This document shows positions 5,401 through 63,119 of a stretch of DNA of 64,000 bases, piece after piece. The notes beneath the pieces were generated by a model. The model was not told where the DNA came from. It was given only the letters and a program-made list of their open reading frames with translations, and searched no databases. This DNA is from Octopus bimaculoides (Eukaryota). Positions within the stretch are counted from its first letter, which is position 1. Every line of letters starts with the position of its first letter. Position numbers and translations under genes: made by a program. The stretch lies in the NCBI RefSeq assembly GCF_001194135.2, contig NC_069001.1:3514735-3578734 (forward strand). The letters run 5' to 3'.

Positions 5401-5565
5401 ACATCATCATCTTAACTCCATTTTCCATGTTGGCATGAGATGGATGATTTGACAAAATCCAGCAAAATGCAAGGTTGTATCAAGCTCCAAAATCAAATTT
5501 GGTGTTGTTTCTGTGGTTTGATGCTCTTCCTAACGCTAACCACTTAACTGTGTGTACTGGGTGAA
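5401..5565 (-). mobile_element. SINE family C fragment with (GAT)n tail
   Basis: catcatcatc..ttttccatgttggcatg..gatgctcttcctaacgctaaccac is the reverse complement of the family C core gtggttggtgttaggaagagcatccagc. Confidence 0.75.
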
Positions 5566-6696
5566 GTTGCCAACTAACTTGCAAGGCAGGAAAAGAGCAG
5601 GTGGAAGTCCTTTTGACTAAGTGGTGGTGGGTAGTTTTTGAGATGGTGGAGTGGCTTTATGTCAGGTGTTGAAAGACTAAAGTATAATAAAGGGATATGT
5701 GCAAATGTCATGCTACAAAGAAGATACATGGTTACCCTGTATTACATAAGTGTGGGTGAGAGCAGTTGAGAAGAAGATAAAGATGGTAGTGATGGGGAGT
5801 GAGAGCAAGCCCTAGAGATACAAGAAGATGAGCATAAGACTGTAGATTGGGAGGGAGAAAGGAGGTTAGTTTCATAAAAGTGTAAGGGGGGTGTAATATA
5901 TAGAGATTGGCAGGGTTGATGGTGAATGTGGTGAGTGACGAATAAGGATGCAATTGATGGGAAATACTAGTAGGGAGAGGGTGTAAGGTGAGAAGAGTGG
6001 AAATGGTTCAGGAATAATAGATCAGGAAGTAGAGGGGGTGATGTGCAAGGTGTAGGAGCAGAAAGGAGAGAGAGACATGGAGGTACATATAGTGAGAGTG
6101 AGAGAGGGTGTGATGGCAGGTATGAGAGGGCATGGTGAATGATAACAGATGTGTATAGATGCATGTGCATATCTTTTGCTGATTGACAAAGGAAGCAAAC
6201 ATCAGTGAAAAGCCAGTACTCTTCAAACAAATTCCTTTGCACCAAGTTACAGACACTCCTTTGTCACTGTTGCTATCAGAAATGCATTGAACCAGTGATT
6301 GGTCTGTTGGAAAACTATCACAAACTGTGATATAAAAACAAGTGGGGAGAGACAAGAAGAGAGATGGCTGGAAGTAAAAATCATTAGATGATAGGGACAG
6401 ATGGTATATCGTTGGGAGCACATTATTAGAAACAGTGAAACAGTAACAGACTAGCAACAGTTAATTCAGTGTTAGCCCTCTCAGAGCAATGTTGAACTCC
6501 ATGAAACCTCAAAAATTTATGTGTCTAGGTTTCCAATTGATTCAGGTATTTGTTCTAATATAGGCTTAATCAAGTTTACATTATTTACATTATAGAACTG
6601 TATTAATCAAGTTTATTGCTAATTAATTTCTGCTGTAAGCTGTTGTCACACCTATATTCTTTCTGGTATTACCTCTCTATTATTAACAGGAGTCAC

Positions 6697-6742
<46 letters not shown>

Positions 6743-7663
6743 NNNNNNNNNNNNNNNNNNNNNNNNNNNNNNNNNNNNNNNNNNNNNNNNNNNNNNNNNN
6801 NNNNNNNNNNNNNNNNNNNNNNNNNNNNNNNNNNNNNNNNNNNNNNNNNNNNNNNNNNNNNNNNNNNNNNNNNNNNNNNNNNNNNNNNNNNNNNNNNNNN
6901 NNNNNNNNNNNNNNNNNNNNNNNNNNNNNNNNNNNNNNNNNNNNNNNNNNNNNNNNNNNNNNNNNNNNNNNNNNNNNNNNNNNNNNNNNNNNNNNNNNNN
7001 NNNNNNNNNNNNNNNNNNNNNNNNNNNNNNNNNNNNNNNNNNNNNNNNNNNNNNNNNNNNNNNNNNNNNNNNNNNNNNNNNNNNNNNNNNNNNNNNNNNN
7101 NNNNNNNNNNNNNNNNNNNNNNNNNNNNNNNNNNNNNNNNNNNNNNNNNNNNNNNNNNNNNNNNNNNNNNNNNNNNNNNNNNNNNNNNNNNNNNNNNNNN
7201 NNNNNNNNNNNNNNNNNNNNNNNNNNNNNNNNNNNNNNNNNNNNNNNNNNNNNNNNNNNNNNNNNNNNNNNNNNNNNNNNNNNNNNNNNNNNNNNNNNNN
7301 NNNNNNNNNNNNNNNNNNNNNNNNNNNNNNNNNNNNNNNNNNNNNNNNNNNNNNNNNNNNNNNNNNNNNNNNNNNNNNNNNNNNNNNNNNNNNNNNNNNN
7401 NNNNNNNNNNNNNNNNNNNNNNNNNNNNNNNNNNNNNNNNNNNNNNNNNNNNNNNNNNNNNNNNNNNNNNNNNNNNNNNNNNNNNNNNNNNNNNNNNNNN
7501 NNNNNNNNNNNNNNNNNNNNNNNNNNNNNNNNNNNNNNNNNNNNNNNNNNNNNNNNNNNNNNNNNNNNNNNNNNNNNNNNNNNNNNNNNNNNNNNNNNNN
7601 NNNNNNNNNNNNNNNNNNNNNNNNNNNNNNNNNNNNNNNNNNNNNNNNNNNNNNNNNNNNNNN
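6743..7663. other. Assembly gap (N run); other gaps at 11752..12365, 19236..19245, 24908..24963, 43755..43792, 46297..47109, 54242..54371, 62446..62561
   Basis: N characters; most gaps are flanked by (TA)n or (CT)n. Confidence 1.
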
Positions 7664-11751: not shown

Positions 11752-13344
11752 NNNNNNNNNNNNNNNNNNNNNNNNNNNNNNNNNNNNNNNNNNNNNNNNN
11801 NNNNNNNNNNNNNNNNNNNNNNNNNNNNNNNNNNNNNNNNNNNNNNNNNNNNNNNNNNNNNNNNNNNNNNNNNNNNNNNNNNNNNNNNNNNNNNNNNNNN
11901 NNNNNNNNNNNNNNNNNNNNNNNNNNNNNNNNNNNNNNNNNNNNNNNNNNNNNNNNNNNNNNNNNNNNNNNNNNNNNNNNNNNNNNNNNNNNNNNNNNNN
12001 NNNNNNNNNNNNNNNNNNNNNNNNNNNNNNNNNNNNNNNNNNNNNNNNNNNNNNNNNNNNNNNNNNNNNNNNNNNNNNNNNNNNNNNNNNNNNNNNNNNN
12101 NNNNNNNNNNNNNNNNNNNNNNNNNNNNNNNNNNNNNNNNNNNNNNNNNNNNNNNNNNNNNNNNNNNNNNNNNNNNNNNNNNNNNNNNNNNNNNNNNNNN
12201 NNNNNNNNNNNNNNNNNNNNNNNNNNNNNNNNNNNNNNNNNNNNNNNNNNNNNNNNNNNNNNNNNNNNNNNNNNNNNNNNNNNNNNNNNNNNNNNNNNNN
12301 NNNNNNNNNNNNNNNNNNNNNNNNNNNNNNNNNNNNNNNNNNNNNNNNNNNNNNNNNNNNNNNNNTTTTTTTTTTTTTTTTTTTGTATAATTTTCTTCAT
12401 TTAATAAATCTTCATTGTGGATAAAATTTGAAAAAGATAGTTTTTGATAAAATACAGAATAAACATTATTTTGGTGTTTTCATTATCAACTACATTAGAC
12501 TGTGATTGACTGTGATTAATGTTAACCCACTTGTCCCCAGTCATTAACCCATTTATCCATAGTTGCTTTGTTAACTCCCTTATGCCCAATTATTGAGTAA
12601 TTCTAAGTATATGAAAGTCATTGTCTGGAATACATGTGTCTGGCAAAGATAACTGAAGAATACTACAAGGAATTGAAAAGACCGTTTTATGGGACAAGTT
12701 AAATGTTTGCTATACAATTTACTATACAGATGCATATTAATTTTAAAAAAATATAACTTGGACTTGCTGCAACATCAGAAAATTATGTGTACAGAGTTAT
12801 TGCCTTATAGAATAATAAGTAAAATGATGTGACAGTTGATGCTAAGATATATGAATCTGTTTTAGCTGAGATAAATTAAGAATATCAAAGAGAATTGGAA
12901 AATATGAAAAGGGTCAAGTCAACAAATGTCATGGACATACATCAATAAAATAGTTAGCATGGACAGGATGGAGTATAAGTAAATTATCATATGGACAAAT
13001 TGTCCTCTAAGTGAAAAAAGAAACTAAAAAAAAGCCATTTTATATTTGTTTTATTGTATAATCTATACGTGTGTAGCATAACCATAATAACTTATGAATA
13101 GAAGTATTGTAATTTATCACTTATAATGTGAACTTAATAGCCAGGATAATTTCATAAGAGTTTCAATTAGTGATGCTATGCAATTAAATAAATTCATTAG
13201 TATATAGATATGCATATATTTATGCATATTATTCAATTCTTTGGTTTTGCTCAATCAATTTGATCCCAGTCCCAACTTAATCTGTAGCTCTCTCTTTGCT
13301 GAACTTATAAGTATTGAAGACATAAACAAATCCACACATAGACA

Positions 13345-13460
13345 CACACACACACATGGAACAGGCCTCTGTACAGTTTCTGACAACTAAATTCACTCAC
13401 AAGGCATTGCTCAACCCCAGCTTATAGTAGAAGACATATTTTCAATGCCCCACACACTGG
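13345..13460 (-). mobile_element. SINE family A fragment
   Basis: aaattcactcacaaggcattg..ttatagtagaagac. Confidence 0.7.
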
Positions 13461-19329: not shown

Positions 19330-19465
19330 TTGGAATGCCTTCTGTCTTAGATGGGACAAAAGGTCACATCTTACTCATATGTTTCCATTTTGGTGTCAAT
19401 GGCTGGATGCTCTTCCTGAAGCCATCCACTTTATGAGGTGGACTGGGTGCATTTCCCTGCTAGGA
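19330..19465 (-). mobile_element. SINE family C fragment
   Basis: ggctggatgctcttcctgaagccatccacttt..gactgggtgc. Confidence 0.65.
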
Positions 19466-19830
19466 AGCAGAATTGCCTGGCCCATTCCTAGAACAAAATA
19501 CATTGGGAAAGTAACACTCCTACTCCGTTGTATCATCTCTGAGACAAACCAGTAGTTATCAGAGTGCATTTAATTTTAATAGTACAAAAGTTTGTATATG
19601 TTGGATTATTTCCTTACATTTCAGAAGACATGTCTATAAAATACCAAACTTTTACTTTCTTTTTAAGTTTTTAAATTTTATTTGCACTTTAGTAGGTATT
19701 ATTTACTTGGGTTTTAATTTTGATATATGGTCTTTGATGGAGAGGGTATGTTTTCATTTAACAGCCAGCAATAAATATCTAACATTGCTCCCAGAAGTAT
19801 GTATGTATGTATTTATATAAACTTTCTCTA

Positions 19831-24997: not shown

Positions 24998-26934
24998 GTA
25001 TGTGGGTGTGTTTGTGTATGTACATATGTGTGTGTGTGTGTGTGTACATACCAACCAAAGTCATAACCAACCCAGTGACATAACTCCTAACTAAATCCCC
25101 TACCCAATTTGTCTCATCACCTTTTCGCAGCAACCTCAAACCAGATGTGTCCTCCACCTCCAAAAATAGAGAGCAGTCACCATATTTCATTCCATATTGG
25201 CTACCTCTGATGAGCATAGGGTTATATAATCGGATTGTTACCTAACACTCCATTGCACCCCTAGCATGAAACCGATTGGTAAGATCAGCCATGATGGATA
25301 TATAACATTGTACACTTTAGATAATATATATATATACACACACACATACACATACATATTTGAAAGAAGACCTGTTCCAAATATATCTATTGACTTCTTC
25401 TCACACATACATACATGCACACACACACACATATATATAAAGAAACTAGACTTCAATGTAGGTGAAGTTAGTGGAGGGAGTAGTGGTGCTATAAATCAGC
25501 TGATAGTCAATAGTAAATATGAGAGAGTCAGTTCTCACCTATGTTGTAGAGTAAGTTGAGAAGCTTTGATCAACTAAGCTTATCGAATCAATTGGATAAT
25601 CTGTACTTAGTATGCAGAATGCTCCTGAAAAGTTTTTTCTCAGCCATGTTGTTGATAGGTCAACAGGTCGCTGTATCCACCACACTACATTAACATTTGC
25701 TTCAGTAAATGGTAGTTAAGTCGATGTTAGCATATTTGATGCAAGGAGCATCAAAATAGTGAACTTGAAAAAAATATGCAGTAGTAAATAAATAACATTA
25801 GTCAATGACTAATAATATTTCCATTTGTATACAGACAATAGAATGTGTTTTAGTTTTATTCTGAGCTCATCAGCAAAATATAGGTTTCAACAGAATGCAG
25901 TAATACAAGTAGTAAGAAGAGTGGGAGTTGTAGAGGTAATAGCCAGGTTTTGTTCTAGTGAGTCACTGATAACAACAGGAGTGGTCAGCTGTGTAATGTC
26001 CAGAGGAAATAATCTAAAAGAACTCATAAGTAAATGGACAACCAATCTGTTCTCTTTGTTCAGTCACACAAACAGAGTAAATAATGTAAGTATGATAATG
26101 TATTGCAGAGTAAATAGATCGGCTATGATTTCTTATTAACAGCAACCTGACTAATGGGTGTATAATCAGTAGATAATGGATGTATAAATAATAGGCTGGC
26201 TGCAGACAATACAAACATGTACCAATGATTATAGCTGTTGTTGTTTAGCAAAAGTTGTTGTTTAGCTCCAAATTAGTCTTAGTTGTGCAGCTGTATGATC
26301 AAATGCAATCCAGCCATGGCAGTCTGCCTTTTTAGGAGGTTTTTTTTTTATAACTAACTACATTATCCACTGTATCCTTTCTTTACTCTGAGATGGTAGT
26401 GTATTTCCTTTCTTTTCTCTGAAATGGTATCAGAGGTGGGATTCACTGTAAAGGATGTAACTAAATATGGTCGGATATAAAATCTAATGCCCTCCTACAT
26501 CACACACTCCATAACCCTTGCCAATGGGTGAGCATTTATGTGGTCACTCAACCTGCTAGAAATATCAATCAACTTCCCTCAATCACATTCCAGTTTTAAA
26601 AATGGGAAGATTGCATTAATATAGTCCAAGAAAAACCTAAAAGAAGGAACCTAAAAGAATCCATGGTCATACAGATTTTGATCACAAGTGCGTCTGATAT
26701 AATAACAAATAATAATATACATAATAGTTTCAAAAGGAAACATTCTGCTTACCTATGTTGCTGCTGAAATTTCCATAATTTAGTATATACATCAAAAGTC
26801 CTACCAAAGTAGGACTGCCATTGTTTATGGCCATACTGAGGCAAATCTCTGAAAAAGAAAAAGCAAGCAATGAAAAAAATATATACACAAAAAAATAAGA
26901 TAAAAGATTTCTTACATTGCTACAATGTCAAAGA

Positions 26935-28333: not shown

Positions 28334-28703
28334 GTTGTTTCAATCATTAGACTCAGCCATGCTAGGACACCACTTTGAAGCATTTCAGTTGAGTGAATTG
28401 ACCCCAAAACTTATAATTTTAAGGCATGATACTTATTCTATCAGTCTAGAATACAGGGACATAAACACACCAACACCAGTTGTCAAGCGGTGGTGGGGGA
28501 CAAACACAGACACAAAGACATGTACACACACACACATATATGGCAGGCTTCTTTCAGTTTCCATCTACCAAATCCACTCACAAAGCTTTGGTCAGCCTGA
28601 GGTTATAGTAGAAGACACTTGCCCAAGGTGCCATGCAGTGGGACTGAACCCAGAACCATGTGGTTGGGAAACAGACTTCTTACCACACAGCCACACCTGC
28701 ACC
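28334..28703 (-). mobile_element. Full-length SINE family A copy (tRNA-derived head, central CA microsatellite, 3' tail)
   Basis: The minus strand starts aggtgcaggtgtggctgtgtggtaag (A box) ..gggttcagtccc (B box) ..ccttgggcaagtgtcttctactata..ggatttggtagatggaaactgaaagaagcc, then a microsatellite, then ..tgattgaaacaac. It resembles the tRNA-derived octopus SINEs (OK/OR type); the exact family name is unverified. Confidence 0.9.
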
Positions 28704-31358: not shown

Positions 31359-31545
31359 TATATATATGATGGGCTTCTTTTAGTTTCCGTCTACCAAATC
31401 CACTCACAAGGCTTTGATCAGCCTGAGGCTATAATAGAAAACACATGCCCAAGGAGACATGCAGTAAGACTGAACCAGGAACCATATGGTTGGGAAGCAA
31501 GCTTCTTACCACACAGCCACACCTATGTATATATAATCTTAAGTA

Positions 31546-33939: not shown

Positions 33940-36110
33940 TATATTTATTCAGGTCTGTAAATGTAAGTCCTACTGCAAAGTGTTTGTCCAAACACAGCCA
34001 TGGCTGCAAGAGGTTCTTTACATCCGGAAGCTTTATTCAATTGAATAACCGAGCTTCTTTCATCAAACTGGTAACCATGTTAAATTGCACTGATCACCTG
34101 ACCATTGGATTGAGTCACATGATATACCAAGTATGTAAATCATGTGAAGCATGCAATGCTGCTGCACAAATGTTATATTCTTTTCCCATTTGTTTTATAT
34201 ACTGCATTCACACTAAGGACTATATTTGATCATTAGCGTACCTTTGTTTATTCCTGTAAATCTATATAAGCTTTACCACAGCATAGGTGATTACTGGTCA
34301 AGTTTGCTGACTTGCAGCACTTTGATACTTTCATCAATACTCTCATCGCTTGATTAAATCTGTAAGCTAAATTCGAGTTCTAGCCTTCAATAAGGATCCA
34401 TATATTATAAGGGCCTCTTGCACTTTCTCAAGGTTTGATATCAGATATGATCACATGACTGCTTTTAACCCATCAACATGATACATAATCAAATCAATCT
34501 AACCTTTCTCTTATTCACTACAAACTGAATCAAATTAGAATTTGGCTGGTATTTTTCTGGTTGTCAATTTTTCAAGAGAACACACTCACCCACTCAATAT
34601 CCAAGTACTTAGTATTTTGATCAGGAAAATATTTCATATTAGATTTTGCTCTATTGTCTTTACCTCTATTATCTATTACCTTTTTCTTTTCTTTGTTTTG
34701 TTTTGTTTTTTTCCTGCTACAGGAATTTCAAAATGTGGAAGTTCTGTAAGAGGCAATTTCACAGTCAAAGAAATTGTTATTTTTGTTGATAAACGAACAA
34801 TGAAGACTTCCAAGTTTCTTCCTTCCACTGTCTGTCTTTTGAATTGGTGACTTCATTACTTTGCAATGGTTCTACCAAACTTTTCTACTGAGTAATTGCT
34901 TGGAGATGTAATTTTTGGAAGTGAAATTCTTCAATGTTTTATACTTCAGTATTCTAAATATACTTCACAGTTTATAAAGTGTAGACCACTATCACAAATG
35001 ATACTTTTTAGAATTCCCCACAATGTGAAAAGCAATTCTATACAACTGATCCAATTATGAGTTCCAGTTGGTTTCATGACAAATATCTCTTGCCAGCATG
35101 ACATGCTACATTTAGAATAACTGTGATTTTCTGATGGGTGGCAGACTTTTGAAATCCACATGCAGTCTCTCCCATATATTTGGAATTATAGATATCATTA
35201 AGGATTTTAACAGCTCAGACAGTTCAAGTGATACACATATCAAACAATTTTTACTTTATCTTTGTCAATACTAGCCCAGCACACTTTACTTCTTGGAAGT
35301 TGCTTTTTTAAACCTGACATTCCTGGGCAATATCTAATACTTTTGTTCTTAACACAAAAGGAATGATGATTCGATTTCTTTGAAGAATGATATCTGATTT
35401 CTCTATAAGCTCTTGTTTTATAGGCAAATAAATACTAGTAGCTGGATTTTTTCCATTCACCAGTTCACAGTACTTCTATTGCTTGGATAGTTGAGTTTTC
35501 CTTTCAAAGTTTTAGTAAGATAGATAAAGTTACTATAGCTTTAGAAATTACATTTGCAATATGTTAGATTCTGGGTGCTCTTTATTAACTGAAGTTAGTA
35601 TCACAGGACATCAATCTAAGTTTTCAGCAAAGTATTCTTGACAAAGGCTTTGCCTTTATATCAAATAGTTGTTGATGGTCACTAAAAATGTCGAATGGTC
35701 TTCCATACAGATATATGCGGAATTTTCACATATCCATACCACAAAAGGTCTTCTTTTTCAGTTTTATAACACCAGTGTTTGATTTTTGAAAGTACTTTGG
35801 AAGCATAGGAAATAACATGATATTCACCTCCTGGAATCATGCACTGATATGGTGTCCAACTCAACAGAACTGGTATTAAAGTGTGATAATATTATAGATG
35901 TTATGCAGTGATTTTAATTCCTGAAATTTTTCAACTTGTTTATTACTCCAATGATTTCCCACCCACCCCAATATAATCTGCTGAAAGAAATAAATGTTAT
36001 ATGATGCATTGATGGATCTAATCCTACTTGATGATAGCCGGTATTAAGATCCAGTTTTAAAAGGAAGCATGATCCATTTAAATTTTCCAATACCTCATCA
36101 ATGGTAAGTA
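33940..36110 (-). mobile_element. Decayed Ty3/Gypsy LTR retrotransposon pol fragment (RT - RNase H - integrase), no LTRs or gag seen
   Basis: RT start LTIDEVLENLNGSCFLLKLDLNTGYHQVGLDPSMHHITF (35914..36110); RNase H NTSSVELDTI and YHVISYASKVLS..EKE (35682..35890); integrase core ELLFTLWGILKSIICDSGLHFIN (34946..35161); downstream KDNRAKSNMKYFPD-like segment. The domain order RT-RH-IN fits Ty3/Gypsy. There are many stops and frameshifts, and the lower boundary is approximate. Confidence 0.85.
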
Positions 36111-36149
36111 GTGAATATTGCATCTTTTAGAAATACAATTTATTCACAA

Positions 36150-37858: not shown

Positions 37859-38025
37859 TACAGGTATGACTGTGTGGTGAAGAAGTTGGCTTCAAAACCA
37901 CATGGTTCTAGGTTTGAGCCCACTGCACAGCACTCCTTGGGCAAGTGTCTTCAACTACAATAGTTTCGGGTTGACCAATGCCTTGTGAGTGGAATTTGGT
38001 AAATGGAAACTGTGCAGAAGATCTA
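37859..38025 (+). mobile_element. SINE family A head
   Basis: gactgtgtggtgaagaag..ggtttgagcccactgc..ccttgggcaagtgtcttc..gccttgtgagtggaatttggtaaatggaaactg. Confidence 0.85.
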
Positions 38026-43754: not shown

Positions 43755-43792
43755 NNNNNNNNNNNNNNNNNNNNNNNNNNNNNNNNNNNNNN

Positions 43793-43853
<61 letters not shown>

Positions 43854-44460
43854 ATTGCCATTCATCTCCTTTACTGCAAGATATCTATTTCTGTCACCAT
43901 TTGGCTCAAAGCCTCCTCCCTCAACATTACTTCCCCACTTCAGTTGAGGGAGCTTGTTTTACAAGTTATTTAATGGCCTTACTGCTGCTGCTGCCACATG
44001 GGATGCACCCCATAAAGTGGTTGGTGTTAGGAAGGACATCCAGCCTTAGCAGACAGTAGAGCTTGGTACAGTCTTCTGTCTTGGCAGCTCCTGTCAAACC
44101 ATCCAAACCATGCCAACATAAAACAAGGACTTAAAGGAGATGGTGGTAGTGATGTTGATGATTTGAGAGGAGATTTGGCTGTTCTTTTTGACTGGTCAAA
44201 CTATCACCTTACTAGTTCATATTAATACAGATGATAACACGGTGATTGCTGTTGCTTAACCCAAGCAATAGACCTTATTTAGACCAAAGGAGTTCCAATT
44301 GTGACCACTCTGCAGTTGGATTATTGTATTTAGTGTCGTTTGTATTGATTGACTCAAGACAGCCCTAATCCAGTATTAGACTTTCCCTACTCGTGACTAT
44401 CCTGCCTTTTAGTCACACAATATATCTATGAGTACATTATTCATATTATGTCTGCTTTCT
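43490..44460 (+). mobile_element. Family D fragments (about 43490..43640, 44162..44460) flanking a (CT)n tract and a SINE family C copy (about 43995..44160)
   Basis: ctcaggtcagc..ggactacattatcc; aaagtggttggtgttaggaaggacatccagc..aaaccatccaaaccatgccaac; gaggagatttggctg. Confidence 0.65.
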
Positions 44461-46267: not shown

Positions 46268-48094
46268 ATATATATATATATATATGATATATATATNNNN
46301 NNNNNNNNNNNNNNNNNNNNNNNNNNNNNNNNNNNNNNNNNNNNNNNNNNNNNNNNNNNNNNNNNNNNNNNNNNNNNNNNNNNNNNNNNNNNNNNNNNNN
46401 NNNNNNNNNNNNNNNNNNNNNNNNNNNNNNNNNNNNNNNNNNNNNNNNNNNNNNNNNNNNNNNNNNNNNNNNNNNNNNNNNNNNNNNNNNNNNNNNNNNN
46501 NNNNNNNNNNNNNNNNNNNNNNNNNNNNNNNNNNNNNNNNNNNNNNNNNNNNNNNNNNNNNNNNNNNNNNNNNNNNNNNNNNNNNNNNNNNNNNNNNNNN
46601 NNNNNNNNNNNNNNNNNNNNNNNNNNNNNNNNNNNNNNNNNNNNNNNNNNNNNNNNNNNNNNNNNNNNNNNNNNNNNNNNNNNNNNNNNNNNNNNNNNNN
46701 NNNNNNNNNNNNNNNNNNNNNNNNNNNNNNNNNNNNNNNNNNNNNNNNNNNNNNNNNNNNNNNNNNNNNNNNNNNNNNNNNNNNNNNNNNNNNNNNNNNN
46801 NNNNNNNNNNNNNNNNNNNNNNNNNNNNNNNNNNNNNNNNNNNNNNNNNNNNNNNNNNNNNNNNNNNNNNNNNNNNNNNNNNNNNNNNNNNNNNNNNNNN
46901 NNNNNNNNNNNNNNNNNNNNNNNNNNNNNNNNNNNNNNNNNNNNNNNNNNNNNNNNNNNNNNNNNNNNNNNNNNNNNNNNNNNNNNNNNNNNNNNNNNNN
47001 NNNNNNNNNNNNNNNNNNNNNNNNNNNNNNNNNNNNNNNNNNNNNNNNNNNNNNNNNNNNNNNNNNNNNNNNNNNNNNNNNNNNNNNNNNNNNNNNNNNN
47101 NNNNNNNNNATAGCACAATGCAAGACCACACCTTTGATGCAAGTCTGAGGTGCCATTCTAATGTCTAAAACTGCAAATATTACATAAATTTCACTTCAAA
47201 CTTTTGTGTAAACTGGCATTGAAAGCAGAGTGGGTACTGAATCAATTGTAACTGATCATTGAAGATGTTTTAAAGTATTTCTTTGTCTTATTATTTGGAT
47301 TATATATATTTATATATAGAAGCTAAATATGAAAAAGTAAAGTTTAGATATGTTGCTATTACCAACCCTTAAGTGGTTGATCAATTAGTTGGTAGGGGGG
47401 TTAATTCTTATCAAGGTTTACATGTTATCAAACAGAACTGAAATAAACATAACACATCTCTCACAGTAATATACATAAACATGTGTGTGTGTGCATGCGC
47501 ACACGCACATGTGTGTGAATTAACAAATTATCATATCATATAACACATATGAGATAACTGTATTTGTTCACACAGATGTGAGTGTATGTGTGTTAAAGAC
47601 AGAGAGAAAGGAAGAGAGAGAGAAAGGGAAAGAGAGAAGGAGGATTGTATTTCATGGAAACAGGATTTATTCATAAAGACTGTGTAGAGTCGGAATGAGC
47701 TGCTTGCCATTCCAATCTAAATGTGAGTCCCATGAGTTTTCTATGCACAGCTCCACTCAACTAGCTAATGTATGTCACAGCCCAGCAACACAGATATTTT
47801 ACTGCGACTAAGCCAACATTCTTTATTATTATGACCAACAATAGGAAAAACAAAACAAACAAACAAAAGTAAGAAAAATGAAAAATCAATGTTAGATATT
47901 GTTGGAGTTTCTGCAGTTACAATAGACAGACAAGTTCAAGAGTCTTTTGTTTTTGTTGGGTAATGTAAGTCAGGAGAAGAGGTGCAATGCCAATGGTCTT
48001 TGCCTTCCATACTCATGGACTGAGGAGATTGATATGGTGACCTTTTGTCTGACCTGAACAACTGCAAGTCAATATCTTTGAGCAAGCATTGCTA

Positions 48095-50310: not shown

Positions 50311-50807
50311 CCAGTAACAAAAAAAAAAAAAGAACAGAGACACTTTTGCTAGGAGTTGAGACTGGCAGATAGTATCAGCAATATGAAAAACCAATGAAAA
50401 TCAATGAAAACAGTTTCCTTGGTTCGGTCAGAAGATCGACTGCCACCATTACACCATGTAAGAAGCTTAAAATAAAATGTAATAATCATAAATAATGTTA
50501 ATTAATGTCTAAGATTTCAGGTTTAGACTGAATAATTGAACACCACTATCTGACCCTTTGAGTGATTTTATCAGAGTTCACTCCATTGCAACTAGCCTGA
50601 TAATACCTTCCTTCCAATAGTCATAGAGGCCCTGAAAAGGATCATAGGGGTGACCTTGCCTCATCTTACTAAACCATTACAAAAAAAGAAAATTTATCTG
50701 CTAAATAACTCATTAAACGATCTTCACTCATGAATGAAGATGTCTTCCAACATAAACTTAGACAAATAGCATATTTCAAATATACCTACATGAATAAACA
50801 GATTAAC

Positions 50808-51003
50808 TTTTCAAGACATTCAATGTAATTTTCACAAAAATTTTCCCCGGTGACTGAAATGGTCTCAACAATTTGGTTCATTTATGTTACAAAATATAAA
50901 TAAATCTATAAAATAAATTTTTCAAGACAATCCACATAATTTACATAGAAATTTTTACCCTACTTTTGACATGGTTTCAACTATTTGGTTCCATTTATGT
51001 TAC
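50808..51003. repeat. Old tandem duplication, period about 110 bp, 2 copies
   Basis: ttttcaagaca..atgg.ctcaac.atttggttc.atttatgttac at about 50808 and about 50918. Confidence 0.7.
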
Positions 51004-51400: not shown

Positions 51401-51572
51401 TGTTAAACAGTGTAACTGGAATATAATTAGAAATATACATAATTTGTTTATTTAAGTTAATTAGAAATTTATAGAAAAAAGTAGTTAGTCTAATTTTGGA
51501 AATATTAGTAGAATATTACATGGTCATGATTCTGTAGTTGTTATAGTCAGTACTGTTTGTGTTTATCAGTTA

Positions 51573-52946
51573 TCAGTTTCTGGGTAATATCACCCGAGAA
51601 TCCCTGGCATCTTTACAAAAAAGAACTCGAATGCCAATACTAAAATTGGTTGCCAGAGCACGAGACCCAAGTTTACTGAGGTGTATTCCATCTCTTGATA
51701 AATATTCCTTATTCACACCACCATCAGTCCAGAAAGCACTGTAATTGTCTAAGAATGCAAAACCACGAACCTGGCATGCACGCATGCAGCAACAATTTGT
51801 AACATTAGTTTTACGGTTCCATTCCCAAGACATTCCACTTCTAGGAAGAATGGAAGAAAACATGATTTTCGTCCCTTTTGGAACAGATAATTTAATTTGT
51901 TCCAACATTGCTCCAACTTTATGGGAAACCAGCTCTGCTGAACTTGTCTCAGCAAGATCATTGCCGCCAGCATGAACAATTATTCCTTTATAATCACCAT
52001 TCTTTGTCAGTTTAATCGCTTCTTCAGAAATTTTTTCAATACAAGCATTATTAAAACTCCTTATATCAATATGACTGATACTTTGCCGAGCCATGTTTTT
52101 CACACCACCTCCCCACACATGTTTAATAACTGAACAGCCAATGATAAGAACTTTATTACCAAATCCTTGTTCAAAGTTTGTGCCATTTTCTTGAATTCTA
52201 CAACAATTACTCTGTAAATGACTACACTCGTCTTTACTCCAAGACGATGATGCACATGAACTCAAACAATGCTGAGAACATGCCAGACTTGGACATGGAC
52301 TTGTTGATGATGTTCGGCGAGGAGATGGTACATACAAACTACTTTTGGGGTTGTTAAAGCAATCAGGACTAAAGTCTATCCAATCAGTAACATCTATCCC
52401 TGGAGGAGTTTGATGCTTTGGTGATGGTTCTGAACACTCCATAGAAATGTCAACTGCCTGACTGTGTTCAATATGGCTCTCTAAATATTCCACACAACCT
52501 TCCAGTTCATGACACTTCCATTTCAGTTCATTATTATCTTGATGCAATTTAGATATTTCTTGTTTCAATTCTTCATTGCAGTCCTCAAGAGATTTTATCT
52601 GTTTCCGTATGTGGTAAAGTCCTCCTTCAAGTCGACAAAGTCTACAAACAAGACTGAATTCTGGTTCATCCACGTTATTATCACGACTAACAATGTTATA
52701 TTCAGACAAACATGTGGAACATATTCTAGTGTTTGAACTGTTGGTTTGAGTACCGTTAGTCTGAACGTGTAAATCTGTGATAGATTTATCAGCACCCATC
52801 ACTTTGCTCGATGATTTGGAAAGATCTTTCAGTATGTGCAAATTATCAGAAATATGGTTGTGTGTAATCTCACAATTTTTAATTGAGTTTTCTGGAACAA
52901 GAAGAAAATTTTCAGAACAGTTTTGTTCCTTAGAGTTACAGCTCAT
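51573..52946 (-). CDS. Intact intronless ORF1p-like protein (457 aa): zinc finger + coiled coil + SGNH/GDSL esterase, non-LTR retrotransposon (CR1/L2/RTE-X type) derived
   Basis: The ORF is uninterrupted and bounded by an in-frame TGA two codons upstream of the ATG (TGA AAA ATG) and by TGA TAA at the end. CSTC (52710..52721) and CRLC (52635..52646) give CX2C-X21-CX2C. The heptads LYHIRKQ IKSLEDC NEELKQE ISKLHQD NNELKWK CHELEGC VEYLESH follow. SGNH blocks are VLIIGCSVIK (Ser codon 52131..52133), IIVHAGGNDL (51957..51968), IMFSSILPR, FLDNY and LSRDGIHLSKLG (51681..51692). Confidence 0.88.
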   Translation of the reverse strand: MSCNSKEQNCSENFLLVPENSIKNCEITHNHISDNLHILKDLSKSSSKVMGADKSITDLHVQTNGTQTNSSNTRICSTCLSEYNIVSRDNNVDEPEFSLVCRLCRLEGGLYHIRKQIKSLEDCNEELKQEISKLHQDNNELKWKCHELEGCVEYLESHIEHSQAVDISMECSEPSPKHQTPPGIDVTDWIDFSPDCFNNPKSSLYVPSPRRTSSTSPCPSLACSQHCLSSCASSSWSKDECSHLQSNCCRIQENGTNFEQGFGNKVLIIGCSVIKHVWGGGVKNMARQSISHIDIRSFNNACIEKISEEAIKLTKNGDYKGIIVHAGGNDLAETSSAELVSHKVGAMLEQIKLSVPKGTKIMFSSILPRSGMSWEWNRKTNVTNCCCMRACQVRGFAFLDNYSAFWTDGGVNKEYLSRDGIHLSKLGSRALATNFSIGIRVLFCKDARDSRVILPRN

Positions 52947-53058
52947 TTTTCACAAAGATATGTACTACATTGAGATTTTCATTTATTTTAACCAAATTAA
53001 TCCAGTGTGTAGTCTAACAATGAACTTGTTAGTGATGTCAAGTGTGGTAAAATGTTGG

Positions 53059-53098: not shown

Positions 53099-54411
53099 TT
53101 GGTAAAATCCAATTCTCAATAACAAAGAAAAAATATTCCAGTGTCAGCCACTAGATAGACCAGAGAAGAACCGACTGACTTTACACACAATCAACTGTCT
53201 GCTATTTGTGTGCTTATCATTTCCAAACAATGGATGTTTTTATATATGTATTGTGTAGAAATAGTGAATTATAAAATAATGACAATCATTTCCACTGACA
53301 TATATCCATCAAGTAGTCTCAGCAATCTCCTGTTCAAGTGATATTGTAAAGGGTCTCTTAGCAACCCTGTGTTCAAGCAATGTTATACATGGGGTGTTGT
53401 AATATATAAATGTTGATGTATTGAATAGAAAGTAGTAAAGGGAATTCCATAACATATGATATATGATGGTGATATATTATTCCGGAAACGTTTTGGTCAA
53501 TCTGATGTAATTATTAGAAATAATCCATTAATTAGGGAAGCCAGACGTCGCCCATTTTTTTTTTTTTTAAGTTAACAAAATGAAAAGAGGCTGAAGAAGA
53601 GTTAGAAAGTCATTCAGTTGTTAAAGGTGAAATGTTTTCATTTCATACAAGGCAACTGAGAGAGAGAGGGAGAGAAAGAGCAAACACACTGCTTCACCGC
53701 TTGTCTCAGTTGTCTTGAATCAATATAAATAATAGCCGAGATGTGAAGATTAACTACATGGCAGTTTGTGCCCTTTAATCAGGTAAATAACTGTTCTTGA
53801 TTGGCAGCATACAACTAGAGCTGGGTTGAAACAGTGGGGTTAACCAGATTAGTATGCGTATTTATACAATTTCAACTGATTAGTGGTGACTGATTTAGTT
53901 TGCTCGAGATAATTCAGAGCAAAGCTAATAACTGGCTGCATGTGTTTGCAAATCAAACTACATCTACTGATAATATTCATTTTCACTAAATCCTAATACT
54001 GATGAATTAAAATTGCTGAGCCATGCAATCTGGATACGTCACTTTACACATCAATTCAGGTAGGACATCCTCACTGACAGTTTCCATCTGCTCAGTCCAG
54101 TAAGCAAACAGAGTATTTTAAATTACATTGGATATTTCACTGGAGTTGAATCAAAGAAGATACTCAGTGAAATGTCTAGAAAAGCTTACAACCTATATTT
54201 TCGTGAACAATAAACAAACCATGGCCTTTTTTTTTTAAAATNNNNNNNNNNNNNNNNNNNNNNNNNNNNNNNNNNNNNNNNNNNNNNNNNNNNNNNNNNN
54301 NNNNNNNNNNNNNNNNNNNNNNNNNNNNNNNNNNNNNNNNNNNNNNNNNNNNNNNNNNNNNNNNNNNNNNNTATATATATATATGTATGTATGTATGTAT
54401 TTGTATGCATA

Positions 54412-58696: not shown

Positions 58697-59042
58697 ATTA
58701 CTTGTTTCAATCATAAGACTGTGACCATGCTGGGACATTGCCTTGAAGAATTTTAGTCAAATGAATCAACCCCAGTATTTGTTATTTAATAAGCCTGGTA
58801 TTTATTCTATCTGTCTCTTTTGCCAAACTGTTAAGTTATGGGGACATGAACACACCAACACCAGTTGTCAATCAGTGGTGCAGGACAAAGATACACACAC
58901 ACACACACATGATACGCTTCTTTCAGTTTCTGTCTACCAAATCCACTCACACAGCTTAGGTCAGACCAAGATGCTTTGCAGTGGGACTGAACCCAGAACC
59001 ATGTGGTCGGGAAACAAACTTCTTACCACATAGCCAAGCCTG
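58697..59042 (-). mobile_element. Near full-length SINE family A copy with a short internal deletion
   Basis: It aligns with 28334..28703 along its length but lacks the tatagtagaagacacttgcccaagg segment. Confidence 0.88.
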
Positions 59043-62445: not shown

Positions 62446-63119
62446 NNNNNNNNNNNNNNNNNNNNNNNNNNNNNNNNNNNNNNNNNNNNNNNNNNNNNNN
62501 NNNNNNNNNNNNNNNNNNNNNNNNNNNNNNNNNNNNNNNNNNNNNNNNNNNNNNNNNNNNNATATATATGTATATATATACACACACACCTCAAGCTAAC
62601 TAAAATCAAAGCTACATAGGTATATAAATATAAAAATCCAGCATCATAAAATTGTATACTACCACAAAAAAATAATTAAAAAAATTCTTTTATATATTTT
62701 TAAAGAAACTTAGGCTACACACACAAAAAAATATATATATATAATTGTTTTAATATTTTATTTGTTTGCTTTATATGTAATGGCATTCTGAAAGTCTCTT
62801 GTTATGTTTTGTTTTGTTTTTTTCTCTTTCATTTAAAACTATTTCTTTAGAATCTTTCCTTAATCTAATACTAGCTGCTATCTAACAAAAATCATCAGCT
62901 GAAATTAGCTATTAGAACAATTAGAAATGTAAACAGATCAATAGAATCAAGATTTAGTAGTCATTTTGTTTGCACAAAAACTGAAATTGTAGAGAAAGGT
63001 CTAACAAATCACAGATACATTCTAAGGAATGGCAAAAAAAAATAGCTAAGACATCACAAAGTCATGTCAAAGTTTAATAAAGCACTGTGATAGATACTAC
63101 CATCCTTTCTACTTAAAGA

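Follow-up and report, generated by a model that had tools for sequence, protein, structure and literature searches.

Does an open reading frame (ORF) that resembles the first protein of an esterase-type LINE retrotransposon, but stands without its reverse transcriptase partner, represent a decaying transposon copy or a gene kept by the host? This question was raised by a 64-kb stretch of Octopus bimaculoides DNA (NC_069001.1, here called the window). A preliminary description of this sequence noted an intact ORF1 with no ORF2 and proposed that it had been preserved by selection as a host gene. In this study, the domain architecture, orthologues, genomic context, selection and transcription of the ORF were analyzed, and the domestication idea is supported.

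Domain architecture of the ORF

An ATG-to-TGA ORF of 457 codons occupies exactly positions 51573..52946, on the minus strand, which the preliminary description did not state. With the base composition of the window, a 458-codon open frame is expected about 6e-11 times in 64 kb, and this is the only long non-artefactual ORF in the window. The complete single-exon coding sequence encodes a Cys4 zinc-ribbon-like motif, a leucine zipper of seven heptads, a predicted disordered linker rich in Ser, Pro and Cys, and an SGNH (GDSL-type) esterase domain. The exact-sequence look-up of the protein found nothing. The gene is unannotated or truncated in current annotations, with a "hypothetical protein, partial" in Argonauta hians, probably because repeat masking hides it.

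The N-terminal region (52722..52946, minus strand, residues 1-75) is predicted to be disordered with pLDDT below 50 and is fast-evolving, displaying 68% identity to A. hians, poor alignability to a second clade of orthologues and a 12-codon in-frame deletion in a congeneric species, yet it is present in all orthologues. It is followed by the Cys4 motif (52635..52721, minus strand), C76-x2-C79, 21 residues, then C101-x2-C104, in which all four Cys are invariant in the five orthologues. A similar CxxC...CxxC module directly precedes the coiled coil in the TE ORF1 protein P0022. The leucine zipper (52473..52619, minus strand, residues 110-158) is composed of the heptads LYHIRKQ, IKSLEDC, NEELKQE, ISKLHQD, NNELKWK, CHELEGC and VEYLESH, with Leu at position d in six consecutive heptads and I/N/I/N at position a, and lies inside a 70-residue helix (99-168) predicted by AlphaFold with pLDDT 85-97. 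The a and d positions are conserved in all five orthologues while other positions vary. The linker (52161..52442, minus strand, residues 169-262, pLDDT below 50) possesses a DWID motif and six or more Cys positions conserved across both clades, with pN/pS of about 0.2 against A. hians. The N-terminal region and the linker, suggested as possible lineage additions, are present in both clades, so they are not recent lineage additions.

The esterase domain (51612..52160, minus strand, residues 263-445) scores E=1.3e-9 with Pfam Lipase_GDSL_2 (PF13472), above its cut-off, and its predicted structure has pLDDT above 90. The best PDB sequence hit is 4c1b, the ZfL2-1 LINE ORF1p esterase of zebrafish, at E=6.8e-6, and the model matches SGNH hydrolases with Foldseek TM 0.76-0.78, normalised to target length. 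Block I GCS (S272), block III HAGGND (H325, N329) and block V DGIH (D419, H422) are canonical, whereas the block II Gly is replaced by Asn (N300, SFNNA). S272, D419, H422 and N329 are present in all five orthologues. Interestingly, the oxyanion Gly (ZfL2-1 G165) is Asn in the three octopod sequences but Gly in the two proteins of the second clade (P0153 and P0155). The two residues reported as specific to transposon esterases, H191 and S228 of ZfL2-1 (PMC3905857), are retained as H325 and S364.

No ORF2 follows the ORF. Pfam finds nothing in three frames over 2.4 kb downstream, and tblastn with two LINE ORF2 proteins finds nothing at E<1 anywhere in the window, although the same probes detect the Mytilus ORF2 at E=1e-55. 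No EN/RT was found at any of the four loci examined, including those of the congeneric species and of a distant genome. By contrast, the nearest non-orthologous relatives are ORF1 proteins; in two of them an EN/RT ORF2 of 1,022-1,080 aa starts 76-115 nt downstream, and in a third ORF2 remnants follow directly. No convincing target-site duplications or LINE tail were found around the ORF. Rfam gave no hits in the window, and the other TE coding remnant that was checked, an LTR-type pol at 34949-36126, is indeed fragmented, as the preliminary description had stated for such remnants.

Orthologues, synteny and purifying selection

Five intact orthologues were identified in two deep clades: the window, the congeneric species, A. 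hians, and two members of a clade that is only 57% identical; the four outside the window are 445-473 aa in length. An exhaustive HMMER search of 1.84 billion representative proteins gives only 2 hits below E=1e-30, and everything else is at most about 36% identical. A word-index search with the A. hians protein finds just three 90%-identity clusters of this gene, though this index proved incomplete, as the esterase domain alone returned only a 28-residue overlap with the protein P0002 and the N-terminus returned nothing. One copy is present in the window. No further copies appear in the protein databases, but without a search of a whole cephalopod genome the copy number remains inconclusive.

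The flanks are colinear with three contigs of the congeneric species. A conserved 3'UTR block or poly(A) signal between the window and one of these contigs was not supported, since identity fluctuates from 84% to 95% without a boundary and the only AATAAA (51452) is not conserved. In the much more distant genome (L018), the ORF lies upstream of the same coding exon of the host gene SCAI on the same strand as in the window. This exon is located at 26753..26848 (minus strand) in the window, about 24.7 kb downstream of the ORF. It displays 93% nucleotide identity to L018 16453-16548, with all 7 differences at third codon positions, an identical 32-aa peptide, and AG and GT splice sites, and it matches Pfam SCAI (PF12070) at E=1.2e-15 over profile positions 15-46. 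A probe for further SCAI exons found only this one. The gene is not an isolated orphan, as first described, but nested at the SCAI locus, its position inside rather than upstream of SCAI being inferred.

Comparison of the window with the Argonauta locus (plus or minus 10 kb, with flanks reaching only 9.5 kb downstream) revealed only short dispersed repeats instead of shared coding neighbours, and no 3' flank similarity. The only alignable non-coding sequence between them is the motif AATGAAAATCTCAATGTAGTACATA (52959..52983, minus strand), 13-37 nt upstream of the ATG. In A. hians it forms the core of a 75-bp unit repeated 8.6 times that ends 9 nt before the ATG, whereas it occurs once in the window. 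It is a candidate promoter or 5'UTR element, with its function inferred. Note that a tandem monomer array of this kind is also a hallmark of active LINE 5'UTRs.

The dN/dS value is 0.07 (bootstrap 0.037-0.114; Fisher p=1e-25) between the window and the congeneric species and 0.14 within the second clade. The esterase domain, which is 93% identical to A. hians and about 88% to the second clade, shows omega of 0.014-0.07 in all pairs. Against A. hians, pS is 0.78 and pN 0.10, while GC3 shifted from 0.27 to 0.58, and silent sites are saturated between clades. Codon-position mismatches are 10/7/57. Moreover, all indels in the ORF are in frame. Against the congeneric species the ORF has one in-frame indel, while the flanks have accumulated 8-20% mismatches and 15 indels, 13 of which break frame.

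Transcription in the second clade

Transcription is shown only in the second clade, in the P0153 species. There the ORF was assembled in more than 20 runs, with 22 contigs on record, and an identical CDS was found in at least 10 runs examined. One contig (L012) is spliced from a GT donor 13 nt after the stop codon (TTTGAT|GTAATT) to the SCAI exon, which follows a polypyrimidine tract and CAG. A transcript spliced in this way should be a target of nonsense-mediated decay, and that isoform may be a by-product. Most contigs are unspliced at this donor, and two of them end 16-19 nt after an ATTAAA located 167 nt past the stop codon, which fits an independent short mRNA. Contigs of the congeneric species could be genomic DNA.

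Origin and possible function

We consider it likely that this is a host gene born from the first ORF of an esterase-type LINE, whose exact clade (CR1, L2 or RTE-X-like) is not resolvable. The LINE copy sat at the SCAI locus, most likely inside a SCAI intron in the sense direction, and lost its EN/RT ORF2 and its 3' tail. Selection has kept its ORF1 since before the split of Octopus and Argonauta, and given the SCAI-linked orthologue in a clade only 57% identical, the gene probably dates from much deeper in cephalopod evolution. The protein is inferred to dimerise through its leucine zipper, as the ZfL2-1 ORF1p coiled coil does. The zipper has Asn at position a, and by this analogy a dimer is more likely than a higher multimer. 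The SGNH domain would then bind, and probably hydrolyse, ester lipids at negatively charged membranes, and the Cys-rich linker may add metal binding or S-acylation. Retained catalysis is about as likely as not. The triad and the oxyanion Asn are intact in all five orthologues but the block II Gly-to-Asn change in octopods may abolish it.

An alternative is that the domesticated protein acts as a restriction factor against esterase-type LINEs, for example by poisoning their ORF1p dimers or RNPs through the coiled coil. The complete ORF1p architecture is retained, a genome-defence role was proposed for L1TD1 (PMC4161310), and octopod genomes probably carry many LINEs. However, this reading seems unlikely, as there is no sign of the rapid or positive evolution expected in an arms race, and the very low, uniform omega fits a fixed cellular biochemical role better. 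The closest TE ORF1 proteins are also too divergent for heteromerisation with current elements to be other than doubtful. Slightly less likely still, the ORF exon could be functionally part of the SCAI transcription unit, either as an alternative first exon and promoter derived from the LINE 5'UTR or as a long upstream ORF that regulates SCAI, with the encoded protein secondary. The spliced contig, the arrangement conserved in two clades and the conserved upstream motif would agree with this. But constraint acts at the amino-acid level, with third-position changes dominating and catalytic residues and heptad positions invariant, which a merely regulatory exon would not show.

It is improbable that the ORF is an ORF1-only non-autonomous retrotransposon, the CR1/L2 counterpart of the mammalian HAL1 "half-L1" elements, or a low-copy LINE lineage in which only functional masters propagate. 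Active TE lineages also show omega below 1, the Argonauta array resembles some LINE 5'UTR promoters, and no genome-wide measure of copy number is available to set against this view. However, the ORF holds the same position relative to SCAI in two distant genomes, its flanks are colinear in the congeneric species, no 3' tail is shared between lineages, and no decayed or paralogous fragments appear in exhaustive protein searches, which include an ENA assembly in which even 33-aa ORFs were called. HAL1 elements likewise have an intact ORF1 without ORF2 but are generally multi-copy and mobile, whereas no other copies were detected here in the protein databases. Finally, a recent, 3'-deleted LINE copy, intact and with ORF1p architecture because it has not yet had time to decay, is refuted by intact orthologues at silent-site saturation (pS 0.68-0.94) in Argonauta and in the second clade and by the contrast between ORF and flanks.

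Among known systems, ZfL2-1 ORF1p (PDB 4c1b; Schneider et al. 2013, PMC3905857) also has a coiled coil followed by an SGNH esterase, with the catalytic Ser/Asp/His, the oxyanion Asn and the transposon-specific His and Ser. The gene described here differs in having no ORF2, in being apparently single-copy and syntenic, in its extra N-terminal region, Cys4 motif and roughly 95-residue Cys-rich linker, and in the block II Asn of octopods, and sequence identity is only about 24%. PAF acetylhydrolase Ib catalytic subunits and bacterial sialate O-acetylesterases match the predicted fold (TM 0.71-0.78, normalised to target length) and catalytic blocks I, III and V, but are only 17-20% identical, have no zinc ribbon, zipper or linker, and have a different evolutionary origin. 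The same evolutionary route, a LINE ORF1 kept as a host gene after loss of ORF2, was taken by the mammalian L1TD1 (ECAT11). L1TD1 has an unrelated fold (L1 ORF1p coiled coil, RRM and CTD, an RNA binder) with no esterase, and shows positive selection and repeated losses in contrast to the strong purifying selection here. Pfam gives no Transposase_22 hit to our protein, only GDSL and generic coiled-coil noise.

More speculatively, the gene may be a coleoid-wide innovation, present in octopods and in decapodiform squids or cuttlefish and hence hundreds of millions of years old. A LINE 5'UTR-derived promoter and the ORF1 esterase would have been captured together inside SCAI, and the protein and SCAI would be produced from a coupled transcription unit, with the protein serving a new membrane-lipid or signalling function in cephalopods. 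We regard this as possible but unlikely; it would be the first domesticated esterase-type ORF1p and a natural experiment on what the enigmatic LINE esterase does.

Domestication of LINE ORF1 proteins is very rare. L1TD1 is described as the only gene whose coding sequence derives from a LINE-1 ORF1 (PMC4161310, PMC11014241), and it belongs to a structurally unrelated ORF1p class. The role of the SGNH esterase in CR1, L2 and RTE-X ORF1 proteins is still open, with lipid and membrane binding having been proposed (PMC3905857). A host-retained copy under very strong constraint in several cephalopod lineages offers a tractable, apparently single-copy version of that protein for biochemistry and genetics, a natural mutant series with the oxyanion Gly in one clade and Asn in the other, and a new example of lineage-specific gene birth in cephalopods.

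Architecture and LINE ORF1p ancestry of the encoded protein

An ORF of 457 codons, running from ATG to TGA, was found in the window at 51573-52946 on the minus strand, which the preliminary description did not state. Given the A+T-rich composition, with a stop probability of 0.074 per codon, about 6e-11 such open frames are expected in 64 kb. It is the only long ORF in the window that is not a simple-repeat or N-gap artefact. All the motifs listed in the preliminary description are present. These comprise C76-x2-C79, 21 residues and then C101-x2-C104; seven heptads from residue 110, with Leu at position d in six consecutive heptads and I/N/I/N/C/V at position a; and block I GCS (S272), block III HAGGND (H325, N329) and block V DGIH (D419, H422), with Asn (N300) where SGNH hydrolases have the block II Gly. 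The Pfam domain Lipase_GDSL_2 passes its cut-off (E=1.3e-9), and the best PDB match by sequence is 4c1b, the esterase of the zebrafish ZfL2-1 LINE ORF1p (E=6.8e-6, residues 265-440). An AlphaFold model built with 62 sequences gives a disordered N-terminus (residues 1-70), a single 70-residue helix (99-168, pLDDT 85-97), a disordered linker (169-262) and a confident esterase domain (263-445, pLDDT above 90). The model matches SGNH esterases with TM 0.76-0.78, normalised to target length.

Esterase-containing ORF1ps were defined by Schneider et al. as a separate architectural class (PMC3905857), featuring a coiled coil plus an SGNH esterase, catalytic S143/D279/H282, oxyanion G165/N195, and two positions conserved only in transposon esterases (H191, S228). 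In the sequence alignment to 4c1b these map to S272, D419, H422, N300 (not Gly), N329, H325 and S364. Outside the orthologues, the nearest relatives among 1.84 billion representative proteins are at most about 36% identical. They have a coiled coil and an esterase, often with PHD or CCHC modules, and one comes from Mytilus. We further examined the contigs encoding such relatives. ORF1 is followed after 76 nt by an EN/RT ORF2 of 1,022 aa in contig L005 and after 115 nt by an EN/RT ORF2 of 1,080 aa in contig L007, while ORF2 remnants follow ORF1 directly in the Mytilus locus L006. The protein is therefore clearly ORF1p-derived.

However, three-frame Pfam scans of the 2.4 kb downstream of the ORF find nothing. 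Searches by tblastn with the two ORF2 proteins also find nothing at E<1 in the whole window, the 21-kb Argonauta locus (L001), the Logan contig or the second-clade genomic locus, although the same probes recover the Mytilus ORF2 at E=1e-55. Target-site duplications and a tail were looked for, and none that was convincing was found.

Orthologues and purifying selection

Five intact full-length sequences were found. Besides the window, these are P0001, from three Logan runs, which is 96% identical; a full 473-codon ORF from Argonauta hians at L001 10055-11476, which is 80% identical and whose annotated 'hypothetical protein, partial' is simply truncated; P0153, from 22 Logan contigs; and P0155, from a 76-kb ENA genomic contig (L018). 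P0153 and P0155 are 89% identical to each other and 57% identical to the window. Sequence alignments reveal conservation of the start and stop positions, the four Cys, the heptad a and d positions, a DWID motif, the linker Cys pattern and nearly the whole esterase. P0153 and P0155 retain the block II Gly (SFNGAS), and the Gly-to-Asn change is therefore derived within octopods.

Substitution rates were estimated by the Nei-Gojobori method. The comparison of the window with P0001 gives dN 0.017, dS 0.238 and omega 0.07 (bootstrap 0.037-0.114; Fisher p=1e-25), whereas that of P0153 with P0155 gives omega 0.14. For the esterase domain, omega is 0.014-0.07 in all pairs. Between the window and A. 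hians the silent sites are saturated (pS 0.78), with pN 0.10 overall and 0.03 in the esterase, and GC3 shifted from 0.27 in the window to 0.58 in A. hians. Mismatches by codon position between the window and P0001 are 10/7/57. The ORF has a single 36-nt in-frame indel, while the roughly 1.6 kb of aligned flanks have 15 indels, 13 of them not multiples of three. A 7-bp tandem duplication relative to the congeneric sequence (AACTGAT twice, window 51566-51579) spans the stop codon, and the protein end (..PRN*) is unchanged.

DNA similarity between the window and Argonauta begins 4 nt before the ATG and ends at the stop codon. The only non-coding sequence alignable between them is AATGAAAAYCTCAATGTAGKACATA, which lies 13-37 nt upstream of the ATG in the window (52959-52983). 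Interestingly, in Argonauta it forms the core of a 75-bp unit repeated 8.6 times (97% matches) at L001 9398-10045, directly upstream of the ORF and ending 9 nt before the ATG. It may be a promoter or 5'UTR element, possibly a relic of the LINE 5'UTR, but remains unexplained. In addition, a short dispersed, SINE-like repeat is present in both orientations in the window (28546-28637, 31368-31454, 58916-58970, 13361-13432 and 37935-38012) and in Argonauta hians (L001 12585-12680 and 18019-18076), with 78-90% identity between them; no tRNA or Rfam match was found in the window. Three other stretches, at window 5483-5656 (-), 19399-19569 (-) and 43853-44056 (+), share in translation a motif of the form HP(V/I)H/K..KW(L/M)..GR(A/T)S and are probably copies of another dispersed repeat family.

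Synteny with SCAI, transcription and copy number

The Logan contigs L002-L004, from the congeneric species, are colinear with the window from 53074 to 50131, through both flanks. Divergence there looks neutral, with an identity of 76-80% on the 5' side and about 84-95% on the 3' side. A tandem duplication of about 113 bp in the 3' flank (window 50778-51003, 75% identity between the copies) is also present in L002 and is thus older than that species split.

The decisive evidence is a downstream exon. L018 carries, 5 kb downstream of its ORF on the same strand, a 96-nt exon with canonical AG and GT splice sites, which is 93% identical to window 26848-26753, on the minus strand and about 24.7 kb downstream of the window ORF. 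All 7 differences are at third codon positions, and the 32-aa peptide, DLPQYGHKQWQSYFGRTFDVYTKLWKFQQQHR, is identical. The peptide is the N-terminal part of the conserved host gene product SCAI (Pfam PF12070, E=1.2e-15, profile positions 15-46). A probe of presumed vertebrate SCAI sequence matches it 33/33 and matches no other exon in the window; no other SCAI exon was detectable in the 64 kb, so the introns here are very long. No other block is conserved between L018 and the window, and the upstream SCAI coding exon therefore probably lies beyond both loci. An intronic, sense-oriented position is thus inferred to be the most likely arrangement, from these two loci and without Argonauta, whose flank is only 9.5 kb. 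The spacing in the window is approximate, since two of the assembly gaps, which are runs of N flanked by microsatellites (6743-7663, 11752-12365, 43755-43792, 46297-47109, 54242-54371, 62446-62561 and others), lie between the ORF and the SCAI exon. A degraded LTR-retrotransposon-type pol at window 34949-36126 (-) also lies between them and helps explain the expanded spacing. Fragments resembling RT, RNase H, the integrase zinc region and the integrase core lie in that order but in different frames, and only the RT piece reaches a weak Pfam RVT_1 hit (E=7.8e-4).

Transcription was detected in the P0153 species, where the CDS is identical in all ten runs examined and all the 3' flanks are identical. 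Contig L012 of this species diverges from the others exactly at TTTGAT|GTAATT, 13 nt after the stop codon, and continues with 30 nt that match the SCAI exon of L018 perfectly; that exon is preceded by TTTTTTTTTCACAG. This is a genuine splice junction, so the runs contain RNA. Moreover, two contigs end 16-19 nt after an ATTAAA located 167 nt past the stop codon, which suggests an independent short mRNA as well. Upstream of the A-run about 75 nt before the ATG, contig L011 of the same species has about 500 nt of 5' sequence that differs from contigs L009, L010 and L012 and does not match L018. It could be an alternative 5' exon, a polymorphism, or an assembly join through the poly-A run.

The window has one copy of the ORF. 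Only two hits fall below E=1e-30 in the exhaustive protein search, and there are only three clusters at 90% identity. One of these comes from an ENA assembly in which even 33-aa ORFs were called, and no decayed fragments turn up there. This evidence for a low copy number is indirect, since no cephalopod genome was searched directly.

Interpretation of the gene

The preliminary description proposed that the ORF has been kept by selection as a host gene, and the evidence supports a domesticated ORF1 gene with rather high confidence. Among the alternatives, a purely regulatory exon of SCAI is unlikely, and a HAL1-like ORF1-only element is more doubtful still. A young truncated copy is refuted. 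The uniform, very low omega also argues against an arms-race restriction role. Domestication of TE genes is known already, and L1TD1, from the unrelated L1 ORF1p class, is described as the only LINE-1 ORF1-derived gene; no description of an esterase-type ORF1 domestication was found in the literature that could be searched.

The mechanism is inferred by analogy with ZfL2-1 ORF1p, which forms a coiled-coil dimer, has an active esterase, and binds acidic phospholipids and liposomes (PMC3905857). We propose that the protein forms a zipper-mediated dimer whose SGNH domain binds, and may hydrolyse, ester lipids at membranes.
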